The notes under the pieces: model-generated
Databases searched by the model: none
What the model saw: only the letters and a program-made list of their open reading frames with translations
Told to the model about the DNA's origin: nothing
Assembly (NCBI RefSeq): GCF_006345805.1
Contig: NC_043010.1
Location: 60,574,001 to 60,638,000, forward strand
Origin: Octopus sinensis
Lineage: Eukaryota
Length of the DNA: 64,000 nt
Reading direction: 5' to 3'
In this document: one piece after another, positions 1,549 through 57,720 of the stretch
Numbering within the stretch: the first letter of the stretch is position 1
Layout of the letters: each line of letters opens with the position of its first letter
Position numbers and translations under genes: made by a program

Positions 1549-1590
1549 AAATTTCTCCTGCTGAAATGTGATGAAGAATTCCAGACATGA
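1549..1590 (+). promoter_or_regulatory. Conserved splice acceptor plus 38-nt leader preceding the Pcdh ATG (present in all nine copies)
   Basis: Pyrimidine tract + TAG, then exactly 38 nt to the ATG in every copy (exon starts 1549, 9529, 15772, 22574, 31832, 40873, 48801, 54713, 63623). Similarity between copies drops just upstream of the AG. Confidence 0.8.
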
Positions 1591-4500
1591 CAGCATATAT
1601 TGGTCTACTGTGTCTTCTACATTTACTGATCACCCTTGTACTGTCCATAGATATTACATACCATGTCAAGGAAGAAGACAGACCTCACACCTATATTGGA
1701 GACATTGCTGTTGACTCCAACTTATCACACCCTCTCACACATCAACAACACACTCTCATTACATTTACACAACTACAAAGGACAGTCGAGAGTGGTTCTC
1801 ACTTATTTAATGTCACCAACTCAGGAAAACTATACACTACTCAAACACTGGACGCTGAGTCTCTGTGTACCTACAACAAGGAATGTTCCAGAATAGTTAA
1901 AGTAGCTGTGAGAAAAGGACAAACCTTTATGAAAATCCTTAAAATAAAAATATTGATACAGGACATCAATGACCATTCTCCAGAATTTCCACAGAATGAA
2001 GTTGAAATTGCATTTTCTGAGAGAGACAGTAAAGGAACTAGAATATCTCTTCTAAACGCAATTGATAAAGATATTTCAATAAGAAATTCCCAACTTAAAT
2101 ATATGATTGAAAAAAGCAAGAGTGAACCATTTTCTCTCTCTGTCACAAAACAGGATGGTATTTTCATACCTGAACTCATACTAGAAGAAACATTAGATAG
2201 GGAACTTCAAGACTCATATATTTTAGCAGTTCAAGCTAAAGATGGAGGAAACCCTCCCAAAACAACTACACTCAAGGTACACATATCTGTAACAGATGTC
2301 AATGATAACACACCTGTATTTTCCCAGAAAGTCTACAATATCTCTATAAATAATTCACATCAAAGACATTTACCAATTCTTACTTTAAAAGCCACAGATA
2401 AAGATTCTGGACTCAATGGAAAGATTTCTTATCATTTCAACCATAAAACATCTCAAAATATACAGAAATATTTTGTATTAAATAAGAAAACTGGAGATTT
2501 ATTTTTAGATGATAAATTTCAATTTACTAAAAAGCAATCTTATAAATTGTTTATTGAAGCAAGGGATGGAGGACAGTCACCCAAAAAATCTGTTACCAGA
2601 GTTCAGCTTCATGTAATTAATAATGAGAATAATGCTCCATTGATAAATATAGATTTTGTATCTCCTTTATCAGAGAGTTCAGCAGCTGTTTCGGAAGCAA
2701 GTAAAATTGGTAGTTTTATAGCTTATGTTATGGTCACTGACACTGATAGTGGACCTAATGGTGAGGTTATCTGTGATTTAAAACATGATAAATTTAAACT
2801 TGCCAAAATTGATTCTAAAGAATATAAAATGATTGTTAAGGGCCATCTTGACAGAGAAATAAGGGACCACTATAAAGTATCTATTGTGTGTCATGACATG
2901 GGGTCACCTCAACTAGAAAGTAAAAAATATTTCTCTGTCAAAGTAACTGATGTCAATGATGTAGAACCACATTTTACCAAAGAGACATTCCAATTCCTCA
3001 CTTATGAGAACCAGAAAGTTGACTTCCCTATTGGCTTCATCAATGCTACAGACCCTGATCTTGGAGATGGAGGCCAACTTACATATTCTATCATCAATGA
3101 TAACAACAATGATAACATTCCTTTCCAACTGACAAAATATGGATTCATTTCTACATCACAACCAATAGATCGAGAAATGAAAGACATCTATAAGTTCCAG
3201 GTTTTAGTGAAAGATAATGGAACACCTTCTCTCAATGACACTGCCAATATTGTTATTGAGATTCTAGATAAAAATGATAATGCTCCGTATTTTACGTTTC
3301 CTAATAATGACCCTACAATCTCGATGTCCACTACCATCCACACAGTAAGAAGGACATCACAATTCTGAGAGCATCTGACAAAGACACTGGAAACAATGCT
3401 TTCCTCACATATGGAATACTGAGATCCAATGATAAAAACCTGTTTACAGTGAACTCACACACTGGTGTGTTATCTTTCTCTCGCACAGTTTACCAAAATG
3501 ATGCAGGAACATATGAGCTGCAGTTTATAGTGAAAGACGGTGGTACTCCAGTTCAATCAGCAACAACTGCTATCATACTAACACTGTTTGTTAGTAATGA
3601 TACAACTCCAATGTTGACTGCTGTGCCATTCCAGTCTGGTCACGACCTGAATATGACTTGGGTAATTATCATTGTAGCAGCAGCTGTAATACTATCTGTG
3701 GCTATTGTAGTGTCCATAACACTGTGTGTTTTCAGATGTATTAATCACACAAATAACTCACCCACAACAGCAGAGAATCCCAACTTTCTCTCTCAGACTG
3801 AGATGAGACAATTACTGTATCAGACTAACAATCCTGTTGCAATAACGAGAAATGCAGAAGAGATATTTAACCGAAATCTTCAGACAATAAAATCTAAAAG
3901 TCAGTTTTTTCTGGAGATGGAACAGACACCAGATGAGTGGAAATTCTCAACAACACAAAGGAGACTTCCACCTGTGCCTCAGGTAAATATTATTTTAATT
4001 GATTTTTCGGAAATGATATATCACAGTTGTGGTTATAACAGTTATGTTCTAGTTTGTATATTTTTTCCTTTTCTTTCTAGAAATGTAAAAGCTTTCCTAT
4101 CAGTTTACACCTTTCAGAATTAGTAGAATTATTTCATTTAACAACTAAACTTGTTTCTCTAATTCTTTTATACAAATAAATTATTGAATATTAATAATTC
4201 TGATGGTCTGATTGTATTACCCTTCCTTGTGTCTTACCTGGGGCATTCTAGAATATAAATGCAAAAGTTTCTTCTTTTTAGCCTAATGATTCACCCTGCT
4301 TTGTTTTCTAATCCACAGAGATGTGATTCAATCCATAGTCAAGGACGTCGCACCAGTTCCATCATGTCTTACAACAGTGACACCTTAACATCCCAAAAGG
4401 ACAGAGAAGCTAGCAAGAGTAATGGCAAGACTAAACCATATGATGAGATACCTGCAGAACCAGGTAACTTTTATCAAAACATAACATATAAATGTAATTG

Positions 4501-4707
4501 CCTTTATTACTGTAGGACAATATATAATGTTATGCTTAGTGTAATATAAGATCAATGTTTCTATCTTTATATATTGGAGTTGTTATATTGAAATGTAATT
4601 TGTGTGTGTGTATTTGATATTTTACAGAATATACCAATGACAATCCAGTGGCAGCCACAATACTAAAGGGACAACAAATACAAGATACGTATCTACAGCC
4701 AACATAG
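1587..4707 (+). CDS. Pcdh: Protocadherin copy A (6 EC + TM + tail); one 1-nt frameshift near 3314
   Basis: join(1587..3982,4319..4463,4628..4707). Signal peptide, EC1 C-x5-C motif ([12 protein letters not shown]), DxNDxxP linkers, DRE and DxD motifs, [33 protein letters not shown] vs CCCTTAC in intact copies splits the ORF (1587..3368 and 3449..4123). Confidence 0.88.
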
Positions 4708-54642: not shown

Positions 54643-54750
54643 TTACCATTGACCTGTTTGCTATTATTTGCATAAGTTATTTTATTTTCAATACTGCTGT
54701 TGTCTTTTGTAGCAATTTCTCCTGCTCAAATGTGATGAAGAATTCCAGAC

Positions 54751-57720
54751 ATGACAGCATATATTGGTCTACTGTGTCTTCTACATTTACTGATCACTCT
54801 TGTACTGTCCATAGATATTACATACCATGTCAAGGAAGAAGGCAGACCTCACACCTATATAGGAAACATTGCTGTTGACTCCAACTTATCACACCCTCTC
54901 ACACATCAACAACACACTCTCATTACATTTACACAACTACAAAGGACAGTCGAGAGTGGTTCTCACTTATTTAATGTCACCAACTCAGGAAAACTCTACA
55001 CTACTCAAACACTGGATGCTGAGTCTCTGTGTACATACAACAAAGAATGTTCCAGAATAGTTAAAGTCGCAGTGAGGAAAGAAGAAACATTTATGAAAAT
55101 TTAAGAATAAAATATTAATAGAAGACATCAATGACCATTCTCCAAAATTTCCAAAGAATGAAGTCACAATTCAGTTTTTTGAAAGAGACAGTAAAGGAGA
55201 TAAAATACCTCTTCCAAATGCAGTTGATGAAGATATTTCGATAAAGAATTCTCAAATTAGATATACAGTTAAGAAAAGTAAAAGAGAAGCATTTTCTCTC
55301 TCTATCACAAAGCGACATGATGGTGTATTCATACCTGAATTAATATTAGAAGATAAATTAGACAGGGAAGTGAAAGACTCATATATGTTCACTCTACAAG
55401 CTACAGATGGAGGAAATCCTCCCAACACAGCTACAATCAAGGTACACATATCTGTAACAGATGTCAATGATAATACACCTGTATTTTCACAGAAACTCTA
55501 CAACATCTCTATAAGTAATTCACATCAAAGACATTTACCAATCCTAACTTTAAAAGCCACAGATCAAGATTCTGGAGACAATGGAAAGATTTCTTATCAT
55601 TTCAACCATAAAACATCTCGAAATATCCAAAAATATTTTGTATTAAATAAGAAGACCGGAGATCTATTTTTACATGACAATTTTCAGTTTAGTAAAAAGC
55701 AGACATATAAATTATTTATTGAAGCACAGGATGAAGGGAGTTCACCCTTAAGTTCTGTAACCAAAGTCCAGATTCACATAATTAATAACCAAAATACTGC
55801 TCCATTGATAAACGTAGATTTTGTATCTCCTTTATCAGAGAGCTCAGCAGCAGTTTCAGAAGCAAGTAAAATTGGTAGTTTTATAGCTTATGTTATGGTC
55901 ACTGACACTGATAGTGGACCTAATGGTGAGATTATCTGTGATTTAAAACATGATAAATTTAAACTTGCCAAAATAGATTCTAAAGAATATAAAATGGTTG
56001 TTAAGGGCCATCTTGACAGAGAAATGAGGGACCACTATAAAGTATCTATTGTGTGTCATGACATGGGGTCACCTCAACTAGAAAGTAAAAAATATTTCTC
56101 TGTCAAAGTAACTGATGTCAATGATGTAGAACCACATTTTACCAAAGAGACATTCCAATTCCTCACCTATGAAAACCAGAAAGTTGACTTCCCTATTGGC
56201 TTCATCAATGCTACAGACCAAGATCTTGGAGATGGAGGCCAACTTACATATTCTATCATCAATGATAACAACAATGATAACATTCCTTTCCAACTGACAA
56301 AATATGGATTCATTTCTACATCACAATCAATAGATCGAGAAATGAAAGACATCTATAAGTTCAAGGTTTTAGTGAAAGATAATGGAACACCTTCTCTCAA
56401 TGACACTGCCAATATTGTTATGAGATTCTAGATAAAAATGATAATGCTCCGTATTTTACGTTTCCTAATAATGACCCTTACAATCTCGATGTCCACTACC
56501 ATCCACACAGTAAGAAGGACATCACAATTCTGAAAGCATCTGACAAAGACACTGGAAACAATGCTTTCCTCACATATGGAATACTGAGATCCAATGATAA
56601 AAACCTGTTTACAGTGAACTCACACACTGGTGTGTTATCTTTCTCTCGCTCAGTTTACCAAAATGATGCAGGAACATATGAGCTGCAGTTTATAGTGAAA
56701 GACGGTGGTACTCCAGTTCAATCAGCAACAACTGCTATCATACTAACACTGTTTGTTAGTAATGATACATCTCCAATGTTGACTGCTGTGCCATTCCAGT
56801 CTGGTCACGACCTGAATATGACTTGGGTAATTATCATTGTAGCAGCAGCTGTAATACTATCTGTGGCTATTGTAGTGTCCATAACACTGTGTGTTTTCAG
56901 ATGTATTAATCACACAAATAACTCACCCACAACAGCAGAGAATCCCAACTTTCTCTCTCAGACTGAGATGAGACAATTACTGTATCAGACTAACAATCCT
57001 GTTGCAATAACGAGAAATGCAGAAGAGATATTTAACCGAAATCTTCAGACAATAAAATCTAAAAGTCAGTTTTTTCTGGAGATGGAACAGACACCAGATG
57101 AGTGGAAATTCTCAACAACACAAAGGAGACTTCCACCTGTGCCTCAGGTAAATATTATTTTGGATAATTGATGTTTCTCTGCTTATTATTATAAAGGTAG
57201 AAGTATTTTATCCATTATTCACGTATGTACAGTTATTACTGCAAAAAAACTCAACTTCAGTCCCTCAGACTGTTTTATTAGGATTGATCTAAACTTGTAT
57301 TTATACAAGATTCCACTTTCTACTATCCACAGAGATGTGATTCAATCCATAGTCAAGACGTCGTACCAGTTCCATCATGTCTTACAACAGTGACACCTTA
57401 ACATCCCAAAAGGACAGAGAAGCTAGCAAGAGTAATGGCAAGACTAAACCATATGATGAGATACCTGCAGAACCAGGTAACTTTTATCAAAACATAACAT
57501 ATAAATGTAATTGCCTTTATTACTGTAGGACAATATATAATGTTATGCTTAGTGTAATACAAGATCAATGTTTCTATCTTTATATATTGGAGTTGTTATA
57601 TTGAAATGTAATTTGTGTTTGTATATTTGATATTTTGCAGAATATACCAATGACAATCCAGTGGCAGCCACAATACTAAAGGGACAACAAATACAAGATA
57701 CCTATCTACAGCCAACATAG
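54751..57720 (+). CDS. Pcdh: Protocadherin copy H; frameshifts near 55102, 56418 and 57356
   Basis: join(54751..57147,57333..57476,57641..57720). Exon 2 is 144 rather than 145 nt; otherwise colinear with intact copies. Confidence 0.82.

Follow-up and report, generated by a model that had tools for sequence, protein, structure and literature searches.

A protocadherin array of Octopus sinensis with diverse EC2-EC3 segments between homogenised flanks suggests domain-partitioned concerted evolution

Introduction

Protocadherins (Pcdhs) recognize each other in trans through an antiparallel EC1-4 dimer, in which EC2/EC3 provide specificity and EC1/EC4 contribute non-selective affinity (Nicoludis et al. 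2016, PMC5001838); specificity in vertebrate Pcdhs has been described as loop-centred. Among the domains encoded by the vertebrate clusters, EC2/EC3 have the highest dS and EC5/EC6 the lowest (Etlioglu et al. 2016, PMC4978886), and region-restricted conversion in clustered Pcdhs is attributed to Noonan et al. 2004, as cited in PMC4978886. For mouse Pcdha, the dS of EC1 is low, 0.31, compared with 2.1 for EC2-3 (PMC4978886). The strongest vertebrate conversion case, zebrafish Pcdh2ab1-12, has dS values of 0.01 in EC6 and 0.12 in EC5 versus 2.91 in EC3 (PMC4978886).

The cephalopod protocadherin expansions, taken as independent of the vertebrate ones in an earlier note on this DNA, are stated to be so in the literature (PMC9068888, PMC4978886). 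The same family and arrays have been reported by Albertin et al. 2022 (PMC9068888), Styfhals et al. 2019/2022 (PMC6339937, PMC9712504) and Jiang et al. 2022 (PMC9795677), and the full-length tree of the last places the recent octopod expansion at 8-14 Ma. Gene conversion in cephalopod protocadherins has been suggested earlier at tree level only, and a domain-resolved partition of these genes was not found in the published literature. These cephalopod papers do not describe that EC2-EC3 are exempt, that promoters and tail exons are homogenised, that subfamilies share EC5-TM, or how old the variable block is relative to the Octopus-Argonauta split.

Organization of the array

The window, a stretch of 64,000 nt from the O. 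sinensis assembly, contains nine protocadherin copies identified by tblastn, eight complete and one truncated. They are arranged head-to-tail on the plus strand, with ATGs at 1587, 9567, 15810, 22612, 31870, 40911, 48839, 54751 and 63661. Each gene has four exons and encodes six EC repeats, a TM segment and a short tail.

1587-4707, plus strand: gene c1, ATG to stop; large exon 1549-3982, exon 3 4319-4463, exon 4 4628-4707; predicted 5'UTR exon upstream of the window; one 1-nt deletion near 3313
9567-12641, plus strand: gene c2, intact; large exon 9529-11963, exon 3 12253-12397, exon 4 12562-12641
15810-18825, plus strand: gene c3; large exon end 18125; 14 indel events including a 78-nt deletion, all confined to 17475-18090
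22612-26125, plus strand: gene c4; large exon end 25006; five small indels; unusually long intron 2 (728 nt)
31870-35030, plus strand: gene c5; large exon end 34262; about 13 small indels scattered over the large exon
40911-44015, plus strand: gene c6, intact; large exon 40873-43307, exon 3 43627-43771, exon 4 43936-44015
48839-51946, plus strand: gene c7, intact; large exon 48801-51238, intron 2 51239-51557, exon 3 51558-51702, intron 3 51703-51866, exon 4 51867-51946; AATAAA at 52053
54751-57720, plus strand: gene c8; stop 57718-57720, the end of the last exon and of the original finding; 2-nt deletion near 55102, 1-nt deletion near 56420, 1-nt frameshift in exon 3 near 57359
63661-64000, plus strand: the initial 113 codons of gene c9, truncated where the window ends

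Gene c7 was used as the reference copy, and the copies were aligned in its reading frame. Its large exon consists of 38 nt of 5'UTR and 2400 nt of coding sequence, and its 874-aa product comprises a signal peptide, EC1-EC6, the TM (aa 691-717) and the tail. Frameshifting indels, many of 1-2 nt, are present in five of the eight complete copies of the O. sinensis assembly (c1, c3, c4, c5 and c8); the O. vulgaris orthologues of c3 and c4 (L001 copies at 2981 and 9659, respectively) are intact. Each gene possesses its own promoter, predicted 5'UTR exon and two C-terminal exons. No constant exons common to several genes were found in the array, where every gene has its own tail exons, and a search of the array for a CGCT-box element was negative.

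Divergence along the coding exon

Comparison of the eight complete copies revealed a nucleotide diversity of 0.02-0.05 over nt 1-312 of the CDS, 0.09-0.23 over nt 313-1122 and 0.00-0.03 over nt 1123-2370. The dS values (Nei-Gojobori, 28 pairs pooled) are 0.067 for aa 1-105, 0.45 for aa 106-376 and 0.042 for aa 377-805. Along the exon, dS is about 0.43-0.48 in the variable block, hereafter V, versus 0.04-0.07 in the remaining coding exon, with a ratio of about 25 between EC2 (0.48) and EC6 (0.02). Maximum-likelihood fitting of two breakpoints to the synonymous differences placed the optimum at codons 103-375, with a pS of 0.337 inside and 0.041 outside; the likelihood gain was 1111, compared with a maximum of 120 in 200 codon-order permutations, none of which came close. 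The intact copies c2, c6 and c7 taken alone gave the same partition. V is about 820 nt long and comprises the last strands of EC1, EC2, EC3 and the first strand of EC4.

1893-2708, plus strand: V of c1, from synonymous breakpoints
9873-10688, plus strand: V of c2, from synonymous breakpoints
16116-16931, plus strand: V of c3, 0.8-0.9% different from the O. vulgaris orthologue
22918-23733, plus strand: V of c4, 1.8-2.0% different from the O. vulgaris orthologue
32177-32991, plus strand: V of c5, from synonymous breakpoints
41217-42032, plus strand: V of c6, from synonymous breakpoints
49145-49963, plus strand: V of c7, from synonymous breakpoints
55057-55873, plus strand: V of c8, from synonymous breakpoints

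The earlier note had described diversity confined to EC2-EC3 between homogenised flanks, and the diversity, dS and breakpoint analyses all bear this out: the near-identity of the flanks extends to synonymous sites as claimed, the boundaries given (~105/110 and 376/377) lie within a few codons of the fitted ones, and synonymous divergence is far from uniform along the exon. The near-identity "in all copies" holds after alignment in the c7 frame, but not for the raw copies with indels. The large exon stops at aa 800 (...PPVPQ/GTAAAT), short of where the ORF ends.

The dN/dS within species is about 0.2 in both V and the constant parts (0.22-0.30), and omega between genera is likewise similar, 0.22 versus 0.21, indicating that the contrast reflects coalescence depth and not constraint. 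Together with the approximately 10-fold difference in dS, this equality indicates that the partition results from homogenisation of the flanks and not from a rapidly evolving middle. No positive selection was detected in V at 30-codon resolution, omega being about 0.22 overall with a window peak of 0.40 (codons 91-390). Omega exceeds 1 in a single 30-codon window, that of the signal peptide (codons 1-30, with a value of 1.5), which holds very few differences. The homogenised coding blocks have a GC3 of 0.31-0.35, whereas V has 0.23 and non-coding DNA 0.24-0.26, a contrast compatible with GC-biased conversion.

Homogenisation of non-coding blocks

The homogenised blocks H1, H2, H3 and H4 are 96-99.9% identical among copies. 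Homogenisation also reaches beyond the large exon, to the promoter and the predicted 5'UTR exon on one side and to both small 3' exons and intron 3 on the other. The H4 block runs from the promoter-proximal region through the predicted 5'UTR exon to ~200 nt into intron 1.

5463-6280, plus strand: H4 of c2, predicted 5'UTR exon end 5935 (AATGCAG/GTAAGT)
13425-14212, plus strand: H4 of c3, predicted 5'UTR exon end 13890
19566-20281, plus strand: H4 of c4, predicted 5'UTR exon end 20037
26901-27677, plus strand: H4 of c5, predicted 5'UTR exon end 27372
35791-36499, plus strand: H4 of c6, predicted 5'UTR exon end 36226
44788-45651, plus strand: H4 of c7, predicted 5'UTR exon end 45288
52650-53500, plus strand: H4 of c8, predicted 5'UTR exon end 53134; core 52739-53339, 96-99.7% identical among copies
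58438-59235, plus strand: H4 of c9, predicted 5'UTR exon end 58914

Identity among copies is 72-86% (14-28% divergence) in the spacer, in intron 2 and over most of intron 1, and the edges of the homogenised blocks coincide with the onset of indel-rich sequence. With a pS of 0.34 and a nucleotide identity of 78-91% among copies, V is about as diverged as these introns and spacers, indicating that it is just unhomogenised, and neither hypermutated nor under pervasive positive selection. The identity of H4 is 96-98% within each genus and only 71-75% between genera, for which purifying selection alone is insufficient.

Comparison across genera and subfamilies

Comparison of three independent assemblies, O. 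sinensis (the window), O. vulgaris (L001) and Argonauta hians (L002), revealed the same partition with the same breakpoints in the latter two. The constant regions share 97-99% identity within a genus and 85-91% between genera. Several Argonauta copies are, in V, equally close to Octopus copies (0.75-0.78) and to their own paralogues. The constant parts cluster by genus and V does not, in agreement with the homogenisation put forward in the earlier note; at the nucleotide level V shows a weak clustering by genus, indicating some homogenisation or turnover in V too. Cross-genus dS is 0.71-0.81 in V and 0.22-0.33 in the constant part, a 2.8-fold ratio that calls for a deep coalescence of the paralogues or for faster evolution of V. 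Between the sister species V is stable, with differences of ~0.9% and ~1.8% between c3 and c4 and their O. vulgaris orthologues.

Two subfamilies, A and B, lie ~175-180 kb apart in both genera, and V is exempt also in subfamily B. For EC5/EC6/TM, the two subfamilies of one genus differ by a dS of 0.23/0.08/0.15 in Octopus and 0.11/0.03/0.03 in Argonauta, whereas dS between genera within the same subfamily is higher (A, 0.32/0.22/0.25; B, 0.33/0.23/0.21). EC4, V and the tail show the reverse order. These values show EC5-EC6-TM to have been homogenised with the second subfamily ~175 kb away after the split of the genera.

Mosaic structure of V

In a set of nine sequences (the eight window copies and O. 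vulgaris v3), 55% of the informative site pairs in V fail the four-gamete test, with an Rm of 49 and a PHI-like permutation p<0.0005. Incompatibility in an 11-copy Octopus set rises from 0.20 at distances below 10 nt to ~0.38 beyond 50 nt. Octopus and Argonauta vary at the same positions of V (odds ratio 4.1, p=4e-6; entropy rho 0.50) and have dimorphic motifs in common. V is a fine-grained mosaic shuffled by short tracts, a feature that the earlier note had missed.

Among multigene families, the MHC peptide-binding exons are an example in which concerted evolution spares or shuffles the recognition segment. Similar to these exons, V seems to carry old polymorphic motifs reassorted by short conversion tracts, with dimorphisms common across species. 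However, the octopus variants are paralogous genes of one array and not alleles, and omega is below 1.

Comparison with vertebrate clusters

The predicted structure of octopus EC1-4 (pLDDT 86) matches the crystal structures of delta-2 and clustered Pcdh EC1-4 with TM-scores of 0.65-0.76, the nearest solved structures being delta-2 as much as clustered Pcdhs. Unlike the loop-centred specificity of vertebrates, the variable positions show no significant enrichment in loops (odds ratio 1.2-1.6). Similar to vertebrate Pcdh alpha/beta/gamma, the octopus array has tandem same-strand large exons for EC1-6 and TM, no 1:1 orthology between distant species, a promoter for each unit with a sequence conserved family-wide, and a dS peak in EC2/EC3 with a minimum in EC5/EC6. 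The extreme dS contrast in one subcluster also resembles that of zebrafish Pcdh2ab1-12, whose EC1/EC4, however, stay diverged, whereas those of octopus belong to the homogenised chassis.

Unlike the vertebrate clusters, the array is of independent origin, EC1 and EC4 are fully homogenised together with the promoter and predicted 5'UTR exon, and V is mosaic on a fine scale. In addition, in contrast to vertebrate alpha/gamma, the octopus units are full genes, whose common tail is maintained by conversion of their own exons 3-4. The echo of vertebrate clusters drawn in the earlier note holds as an evolutionary pattern, with dS highest in EC2/EC3, but not for the architecture, which lacks shared constant exons and the CGCT box. 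The partition is as the model of Nicoludis et al. (PMC5001838) predicts if specificity alone diversified.

Alternative explanations

The exemption of V could be passive, through heteroduplex rejection once divergence exceeds a threshold. In this alternative, which we consider rather unlikely, EC2-EC3, like the big introns, drifted past the identity threshold and its diversity has no role in specificity. Equal omega, well below 1 in V as elsewhere, would suit such drift, as would a V as diverged as the unhomogenised introns and spacer and homogenised edges lying where indel-rich sequence starts; yet it gives no reason for V escaping before other coding parts. Moreover, the same block is exempt in Octopus, Argonauta and subfamily B, identical V positions are variable in both genera, V is conserved between sister-species orthologues, and the exempt block corresponds to the specificity module of the vertebrate homologues.

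Cephalopod coding regions near editing sites are constrained. Nucleotide-level purifying selection, on RNA structures for A-to-I editing or on exonic regulatory elements, would also fit the lower cross-genus dS in the constant part, but it is a very improbable source of the synonymous identity. As the sole cause it is contradicted, since it cannot make paralogues 5-7 times closer within than between genera (constant-part dS 0.04 versus 0.27) or produce genus-specific states common to all paralogues, and since H4 and intron 3, although homogenised in each genus, are only 71-80% identical between genera.

Still less credible is a scenario without gene conversion, in which the genes duplicated in tandem very recently and hypermutation or strong diversifying selection then acted on EC2-EC3 alone. 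The near-identical flanks make the array look young, and the published tree has a recent octopod expansion (PMC9795677). This scenario is contradicted by the excess at synonymous sites (dS 0.43-0.48 versus 0.04, omega 0.22), the 14-28% divergence of introns and spacers in the same units, a cross-genus V/constant dS ratio of 2.8 and not 10, an EC5-TM common to subfamilies older than the genus split, and the genus-specific homogenisation of non-coding H4. Mixing of reads from different copies during assembly or polishing, homogenising the consensus where copies are similar, is the least likely of all: tandem repeats are prone to such errors and the many 1-2-nt indels in the O. sinensis copies are typical of long-read consensus errors, but the assemblies of O. 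vulgaris and A. hians have the partition and breakpoints as well, the genera differ at ~9% of constant-region sites compared with 0.5-2.7% among paralogues within each genus, and private differences in the constant regions are low but non-zero.

Proposed model

We propose that the array is probably under domain-partitioned concerted evolution from which V is exempt, with V giving recognition specificity by homology. Recurrent non-reciprocal exchange, by gene conversion and some unequal crossing-over, keeps a chassis 96-99.9% identical, consisting of the promoter and predicted 5'UTR exon, the signal peptide and the greater part of EC1, the large exon from EC4 to the cytoplasmic part, and the small 3' exons with their intron. 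V, the two large introns and the spacer are exempt from long-tract homogenisation. The diversity of V probably dates back at least to about the time of the Octopus-Argonauta split, and very short tracts alone reshuffle it, resulting in a distinct mosaic EC2-EC3 for each gene. As homology to the clustered and delta Pcdhs of vertebrates suggests, the proteins may form antiparallel EC1-4 trans dimers, in which EC1:EC4 contacts might provide a common affinity and EC2:EC3 contacts the isoform specificity. Selection may remove conversion products that erase V differences, while the common chassis would keep cis-interaction, signalling and regulation interchangeable. By analogy with vertebrates, the array might serve as a "neuronal barcode". 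If this model is true, the array would be a family of recognition isoforms differing solely in the specificity module.

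Organization of the array and identity of the proteins

A tblastn search with the longest ORF as query revealed nine protocadherin copies (c1-c9) in the AT-rich window (GC 27-39% per 2-kb window), arranged head to tail, 5.9-9.3 kb apart, with the following start codons.

1587, + strand, ATG of c1
9567, + strand, ATG of c2
15810, + strand, ATG of c3
22612, + strand, ATG of c4
31870, + strand, ATG of c5
40911, + strand, ATG of c6
48839, + strand, ATG of c7
54751, + strand, ATG of c8
63661, + strand, ATG of c9, which is cut off by the window end

The intact copies (c2, c6 and c7) encode 873-874 aa. 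The database matches are headed by Octopus sinensis proteins named 'protocadherin beta-15-like', with O. vulgaris and Argonauta hians proteins next. Pfam assigned a Cadherin_2 domain (protocadherin N-terminal type) to aa 23-108, plus five Cadherin stretches. A phmmer search against the PDB aligned aa 23-666 with EC1-6 protocadherin ectodomains (E=5e-91), and a hydrophobic segment at aa 691-717 corresponds to the TM. The array genes are protocadherins: behind a signal peptide and Cadherin_2 come the other cadherin repeats, one TM segment and a cytoplasmic tail. The AF2 model of EC1-4 (pLDDT 86) adopts the fold of solved protocadherin trans-dimer fragments; its best five Foldseek matches are EC1-4 of Pcdh18, Pcdh8.1, Pcdh17, PcdhgC4 and Pcdh19 (E ~1e-44 to 1e-41), with TM-scores of 0.65-0.71 for these five and up to 0.81 among the 50 matches listed.

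The 74 C-terminal residues of annotated relatives are absent from the large ORF; tblastn placed them 3' of each copy, divided between two small exons, of which exon 3 starts ~190-730 nt beyond the large exon. Therefore, every gene owns its tail and no constant exons are shared. The 3' end of the reference copy c7 is as follows.

+ strand, large exon to aa 800 (...PPVPQ/GTAAAT)
51558-51702, + strand, exon 3
51867-51946, + strand, exon 4
52053, + strand, AATAAA

At the 5' end, the splice acceptor TTTTGTAG is kept 38 nt upstream of each ATG, in Argonauta too, and a conserved donor AATGCAG/GTAAGT closes a block ~1.6-4.7 kb farther upstream in each gene. Judged by these signals, this block is a putative 5'UTR exon, with a predicted splice from exon 1 to exon 2.

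The reading frames of c1, c3, c4, c5 and c8 are broken by 1-2-nt indels (c1, 3313; c3, 17475-18090; c4, 23877-24678; c5, 32046-33842; c8, 55102, 56420 and 57359), and c3 also carries a 78-nt deletion. All 14 indel events of c3 fall inside ~620 nt (17475-18090), and c3 and c4 each have an intact orthologue in O. vulgaris. The indels are probably long-read consensus or local assembly errors in the O. sinensis sequence; it is also possible that the broken copies are recent real pseudogenes. NCBI models seem to span the breaks by small gaps or alternative starts, as in the protein model P0006 for c8. Analyses were carried out in the c7 reading frame with gapped codons removed.

Diversity is partitioned along the coding exon and the repeat unit

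Over CDS nt 1-312 the eight complete copies have a nucleotide diversity of 0.02-0.05, which rises to 0.09-0.23 over nt 313-1122 and drops to 0.00-0.03 over nt 1123-2370. Pooled Nei-Gojobori estimates, in which transition bias is ignored, yielded dS and dN values of 0.067 and 0.020 for aa 1-105, 0.45 and 0.099 for aa 106-376, and 0.042 and 0.0095 for aa 377-805, with omega (dN/dS) of 0.22-0.30 in all three parts alike. The maximum-likelihood two-breakpoint split of the synonymous differences places a variable block (V) at codons 103-375, comprising the end of EC1, EC2, EC3 and the start of EC4, with a pS of 0.337 inside and 0.041 outside; none of 200 codon-order permutations reached this contrast. 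The intact copies by themselves gave the same partition. By domain, dS in O. sinensis is 0.17 for EC1, 0.48 for EC2, 0.41 for EC3, 0.10 for EC4, 0.05 for EC5, 0.02 for EC6, 0.01 for the TM and 0.06 for the cytoplasmic part. The earlier note had placed the diversity in EC2-EC3, and its boundaries were right; the uniform synonymous divergence that it named as the contrary outcome was not seen (pS 0.34 in V versus 0.04 elsewhere).

Comparison with c7 along the full repeat unit revealed four homogenised blocks (H1-H4). Positions below are relative to the c7 ATG, with the identity among copies.

-50 to +300, H1: end of intron 1, signal peptide and most of EC1; 96-99%
301 to 1100, V: end of EC1, EC2, EC3 and start of EC4; 78-91%
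1101 to 2400, H2: EC4 to the end of the large exon; 95-99.9%
2401 to 2700, intron 2; 72-87%
2701 to 3200, H3: exon 3, intron 3, exon 4 and 3'UTR to about the poly(A) signal; 97-99%
3201 to 3900, intergenic spacer; 66-86%
3901 to 4500, H4: promoter-proximal DNA of the next gene, 5'UTR exon and first ~200 nt of intron 1; 90-99.7% (core 3901-4300, 96-99.7%)
beyond 4500, rest of intron 1; mostly 73-90%

V is thus not unusually diverged; it sits at the background level set by the unhomogenised remainder of the unit, and the H blocks are the exception.

Concerted evolution of the homogenised blocks

The partition is strongly supported as the product of gene conversion, or concerted evolution, among the array genes. 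The earlier note had proposed this for the flanks of V, and the process also reaches the promoter, UTR exon and tail exons. Omega in V and in the constant parts is equal within species and 0.22 versus 0.21 between genera, so the contrast reflects coalescence depth, neither selective constraint nor positive selection. The cross-species sample comprised three O. vulgaris and three Argonauta DNA copies and one gene per genus of a second subfamily (B). The partition is repeated in the three intact copies of the O. vulgaris locus L001 (dS of 0.058, 0.43 and 0.061 for the N-terminal constant part, V and the C-terminal constant part) and in the three of the A. hians locus L002 (0.10, 0.39 and 0.078). 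In the constant regions, identity is 97-99% within a genus but falls to 85-91% between genera, and ~9% of nucleotide sites differ between genera versus 0.5-2.7% among paralogues of one genus. In V, several Argonauta paralogues are equally near to Octopus copies (0.75-0.78) and to other Argonauta copies. H4, which is non-coding, is 96-98% identical within each genus and 71-75% between genera, and of the non-coding DNA only H3 and H4 can be aligned between genera.

Subfamily B has a distinct cytoplasmic tail and lies ~175-180 kb from the array (subfamily A) in both genera (O. vulgaris L003, OX597827.1, 79.47 Mb; A. hians L004, BAAFZT010000037.1, 10.54 Mb). The two subfamilies have genus-specific states in common in EC5, EC6 and the TM, where dS between A and B within a genus (0.23, 0.08 and 0.15 in Octopus; 0.11, 0.03 and 0.03 in Argonauta) is lower than dS between genera within the same subfamily (0.32, 0.22 and 0.25 for A; 0.33, 0.23 and 0.21 for B). 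The order is reversed for EC4, V and the tail. Since A and B are both present in both genera, EC5-TM was homogenised after the genus split, which implies long-range conversion. Homogenisation is therefore nested, acting on EC5-EC6-TM across subfamilies, on EC1, EC4, the tail, the promoter and the 5'UTR within the array, and not on EC2-EC3. The A. hians protein model P0020 looks like a chimaera, with EC1 and EC4-EC5 of type A and different EC2-3 and tail.

GC3 is 0.31-0.35 in the homogenised coding blocks versus 0.23 in V and 0.24-0.26 in non-coding DNA, and the homogenised intron 3 has no GC enrichment. The GC3 excess is compatible with GC-biased conversion, to which codon-usage or amino-acid composition effects may contribute. 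Several block edges are exon edges, so RNA- or cDNA-templated conversion was considered; it was rejected because homogenisation also covers intron 3, promoter-proximal DNA and the initial ~200 nt of intron 1. As a sole cause, nucleotide-level purifying selection is excluded by the discordance of within-genus and between-genus identity, H4 included. Recent duplication followed by hypermutation is excluded in the same sense by the equal omega and the A/B and H4 discordance. An assembly artefact as sole cause is excluded by the recurrence of the partition in independent assemblies and the discordance between genera.

Structure and age of the variable block

V distances among the window copies are 9.5-16% pairwise and star-like, and the closest paralogue switches every 100-200 nt. 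In the eight window copies plus v3, an O. vulgaris copy in L001, 55% of informative V site pairs fail the four-gamete test, the Hudson-Kaplan Rm is 49 in 840 nt, and adjacent sites are more compatible than permuted ones (PHI-like test, p<0.0005). Over all 11 Octopus copies, incompatibility increases from 0.20 at <10 nt to ~0.38 beyond 50 nt. These results are consistent with a fine-grained patchwork of many short conversion tracts laid down over a long time, with some recurrent mutation.

V of c3 and c4 differs by only 0.9% and 1.8% from the O. vulgaris orthologues and was thus stable across the O. sinensis-O. vulgaris split. The two species are colinear from window position 12857 to 29644 (identity 95.5-97.2%), and colinearity breaks inside intron 1 of c5 (window ~29644-31767 versus L001 16150-17451). 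The pair c5 and v3 was rejected as orthologues with a recently converted V, as upstream colinearity is broken (window ~29644, L001 ~16150) and the immediate 5' flanks differ. No window copy is orthologous to v3, whose V block is at least 10% from all of them. The broken colinearity together with this unmatched copy indicates that repeat units were gained or lost between the sister species, and does not mark a conversion event that could be dated.

V tends to vary at the same positions in Octopus as in Argonauta, with 35 positions variable in both (odds ratio 4.1, p=4e-6; entropy rho, 0.50), and both genera carry the dimorphic motifs GK/EE (aa 110-112), LSSVT/KK.VA (aa 333-339) and EDSE[VL]D/EASK[IV][GN] (aa 371-376). 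Within a genus V dS is 0.39-0.48, no lower than that of the constant parts across genera (0.22-0.33); for V itself the cross-genus value is 0.71-0.81. By our reading, the V lineages date back at least to the Octopus-Argonauta split and have since undergone turnover and shuffling; part of this depth may come from a moderately raised rate in V. Sites polymorphic in both genera number 62 versus 36 expected, with both alleles common to 38 of them and a modest excess per codon position. This is only suggestive of trans-species nucleotide polymorphism, with parallel mutation as an alternative.

Positive selection as the cause of V was rejected at window resolution (Nei-Gojobori omega of 0.15-0.40 per window); omega is 0.22 over V, with a maximum of 0.40 in 30-codon windows and no value >1. 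The variable positions show no significant enrichment in loops of the AF2 secondary structure, and in several strands they alternate, as expected of one exposed sheet face.

Promoter-proximal DNA and other non-coding features

The conserved promoter block of H4 includes CCTATTGG and GCTGATAGC. The promoter-proximal stretch 52722-52900 and its equivalents in other H4 blocks are conserved between genera and contain an inverted CCAAT box (CCTATTGG), the palindrome TCAATATTGA and a GATA-like element (GCTGATAGC), followed by (TG)n and (CAG)n microsatellites within the putative 5'UTR exon. Intron 1 begins with ~60 nt (ATTATCTTTTCATATTCATTATAACATTTATATT) in which Octopus and Argonauta differ at a single base (A and G, respectively). 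A uORF of 15 codons is conserved in every copy and in Argonauta L002 (in c8, 53129-53134 spliced to 54713-54754). It opens with ATG CAG, the final 6 nt of the putative 5'UTR exon, runs on through the large exon's 38-nt leader and closes with a TGA that overlaps the start codon of the main ORF (ATGA). Octopus and Argonauta have this frame and overlap in common, with differences at several codons. Given the predicted exon 1-exon 2 splice, the uORF suggests possible translational control by termination-reinitiation.

CpG is strongly depleted over the window (observed/expected 0.21), with 1-4 CpGs per H4 block. Intron 1 of c6 contains a TE-like structure (39750-40404), in which a 141-bp unit with (AAT)n is repeated in tandem at 40041-40325 (97% identical) and recurs in part, inverted, at 39750-39975. 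Other introns carry long (TA)n and (TG)n microsatellites, e.g. at 7026-7190 and directly upstream of c8 and c9. Within the long first introns, stretches at 28000-32000, 46000-48000 and 60000-64000 have a marked negative GC skew, combined in two of these stretches with marked AT skew; their ORFs of 129-238 aa have no Pfam matches, and these stretches are probably degenerate repeats mostly not common to the units. Seven intronic or intergenic ORFs gave no significant Pfam match, and an Rfam search of the whole window gave no matches.

Comparison with vertebrate clustered protocadherins

Similar to the vertebrate-type clusters, the array is tandem, in one orientation, with large exons that each encode EC1-6 and the TM. 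However, each octopus copy has its own exons 3-4 and is not spliced to shared constant exons as in the vertebrate alpha and gamma clusters. Cephalopod genes have likewise been described without shared constant exons, their expansions arising by full-gene duplication (PMC9068888). As for the vertebrate promoter element, a CGCT box ~200 bp upstream of the ATG, no conserved CGCT or AGCG was found in the H4 blocks or in the 300 nt upstream of the ATGs; a different conserved promoter block is present. Nor do the proteins point to common descent with the vertebrate alpha/beta/gamma genes, identity to delta-2 and clustered protocadherins being equally low (28-34%, phmmer against the PDB and Foldseek); published phylogenies place the cephalopod expansions as independent of vertebrates (PMC4978886, PMC9068888, PMC9712504).

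In vertebrate clusters, dS peaks in EC2/EC3 and is lowest in EC5/EC6, EC2-3 being largely exempt from conversion (PMC4978886). Values are 0.31, 2.08, 2.15 and 0.27 for EC1, EC2, EC3 and EC5 of mouse Pcdha, and 2.91 and 0.01 for EC3 and EC6 of zebrafish Pcdh2ab (PMC4978886). We found no domain-resolved analysis of cephalopod protocadherin arrays in the published literature. The octopus array is unlike a vertebrate-type locus in exons, CGCT box and descent, and alike in its conversion pattern. The parallel drawn in the earlier note therefore stands as convergent evolutionary dynamics and fails for shared constant exons, the CGCT box and common descent.

Proposed model and implications

The trans dimers of vertebrate clustered and delta protocadherins are antiparallel and involve EC1-4; in them, EC2/EC3 set isoform specificity and a hydrophobic EC1/EC4 contact provides non-selective affinity. 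This dimer has been argued to be older than the divergence of the protocadherin families (PMC5001838). By homology the octopus proteins would form the same dimers, and the partition is what this model would predict if specificity alone diversified. The simplest explanation for the exemption of V would be that convertants erasing V differences are selected against. A serious rival is a passive divergence barrier, by which V would escape conversion owing to its divergence; since omega is the same in V and elsewhere, V has no intrinsic reason to escape first, and we consider this rival unlikely.

We tentatively propose, as a possibility still short of even chances, a convergent octopus recognition code. 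It would be built from whole genes, in place of the vertebrate variable exons spliced onto a constant region. The promoter, the 5'UTR with its uORF, EC1, EC4-EC6, TM and tail would be kept interchangeable as a chassis through gene conversion, and a protected pre-split EC2-EC3 pool would be micro-converted into many specificities. Near-identical promoters would permit stochastic or combinatorial isoform choice in neurons. About 19-21 PCDH genes have been detected per octopus brain cell (PMC9712504). A 'neuronal barcode' role of the array is a well-motivated hypothesis. The model predicts that EC2-EC3 swaps among array members transfer homophilic specificity, with EC1, EC4-6 and the tail interchangeable.

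Octopod PCDH expansions have been dated to 65 Ma and 8-14 Ma from full-length trees (PMC9795677). V-block dS (0.40-0.48) exceeds the constant-part dS between Octopus and Argonauta (0.22-0.33), and ~70% of the array coding sequence is homogenised, so published full-length-tree dates for such arrays are probably too young, and the 'lineage-specific expansions' seen in such cephalopod trees are likewise biased young by conversion. In addition, H3 (51558-52060 and equivalents) is 97-99% identical, so 3'-tag single-cell reads would multi-map and could not be assigned to single members; published single-cell atlases may therefore miss individual array genes, and hence barcode-type expression. The array also indicates that a common cytoplasmic tail can persist through conversion, without splicing to shared exons. 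In a large family of neuronal adhesion proteins, it represents a second, independent case of homogenisation that spares EC2-EC3 only. This lends weight to the idea that the rule stems from the way protocadherins recognize each other, and not from vertebrate history alone.
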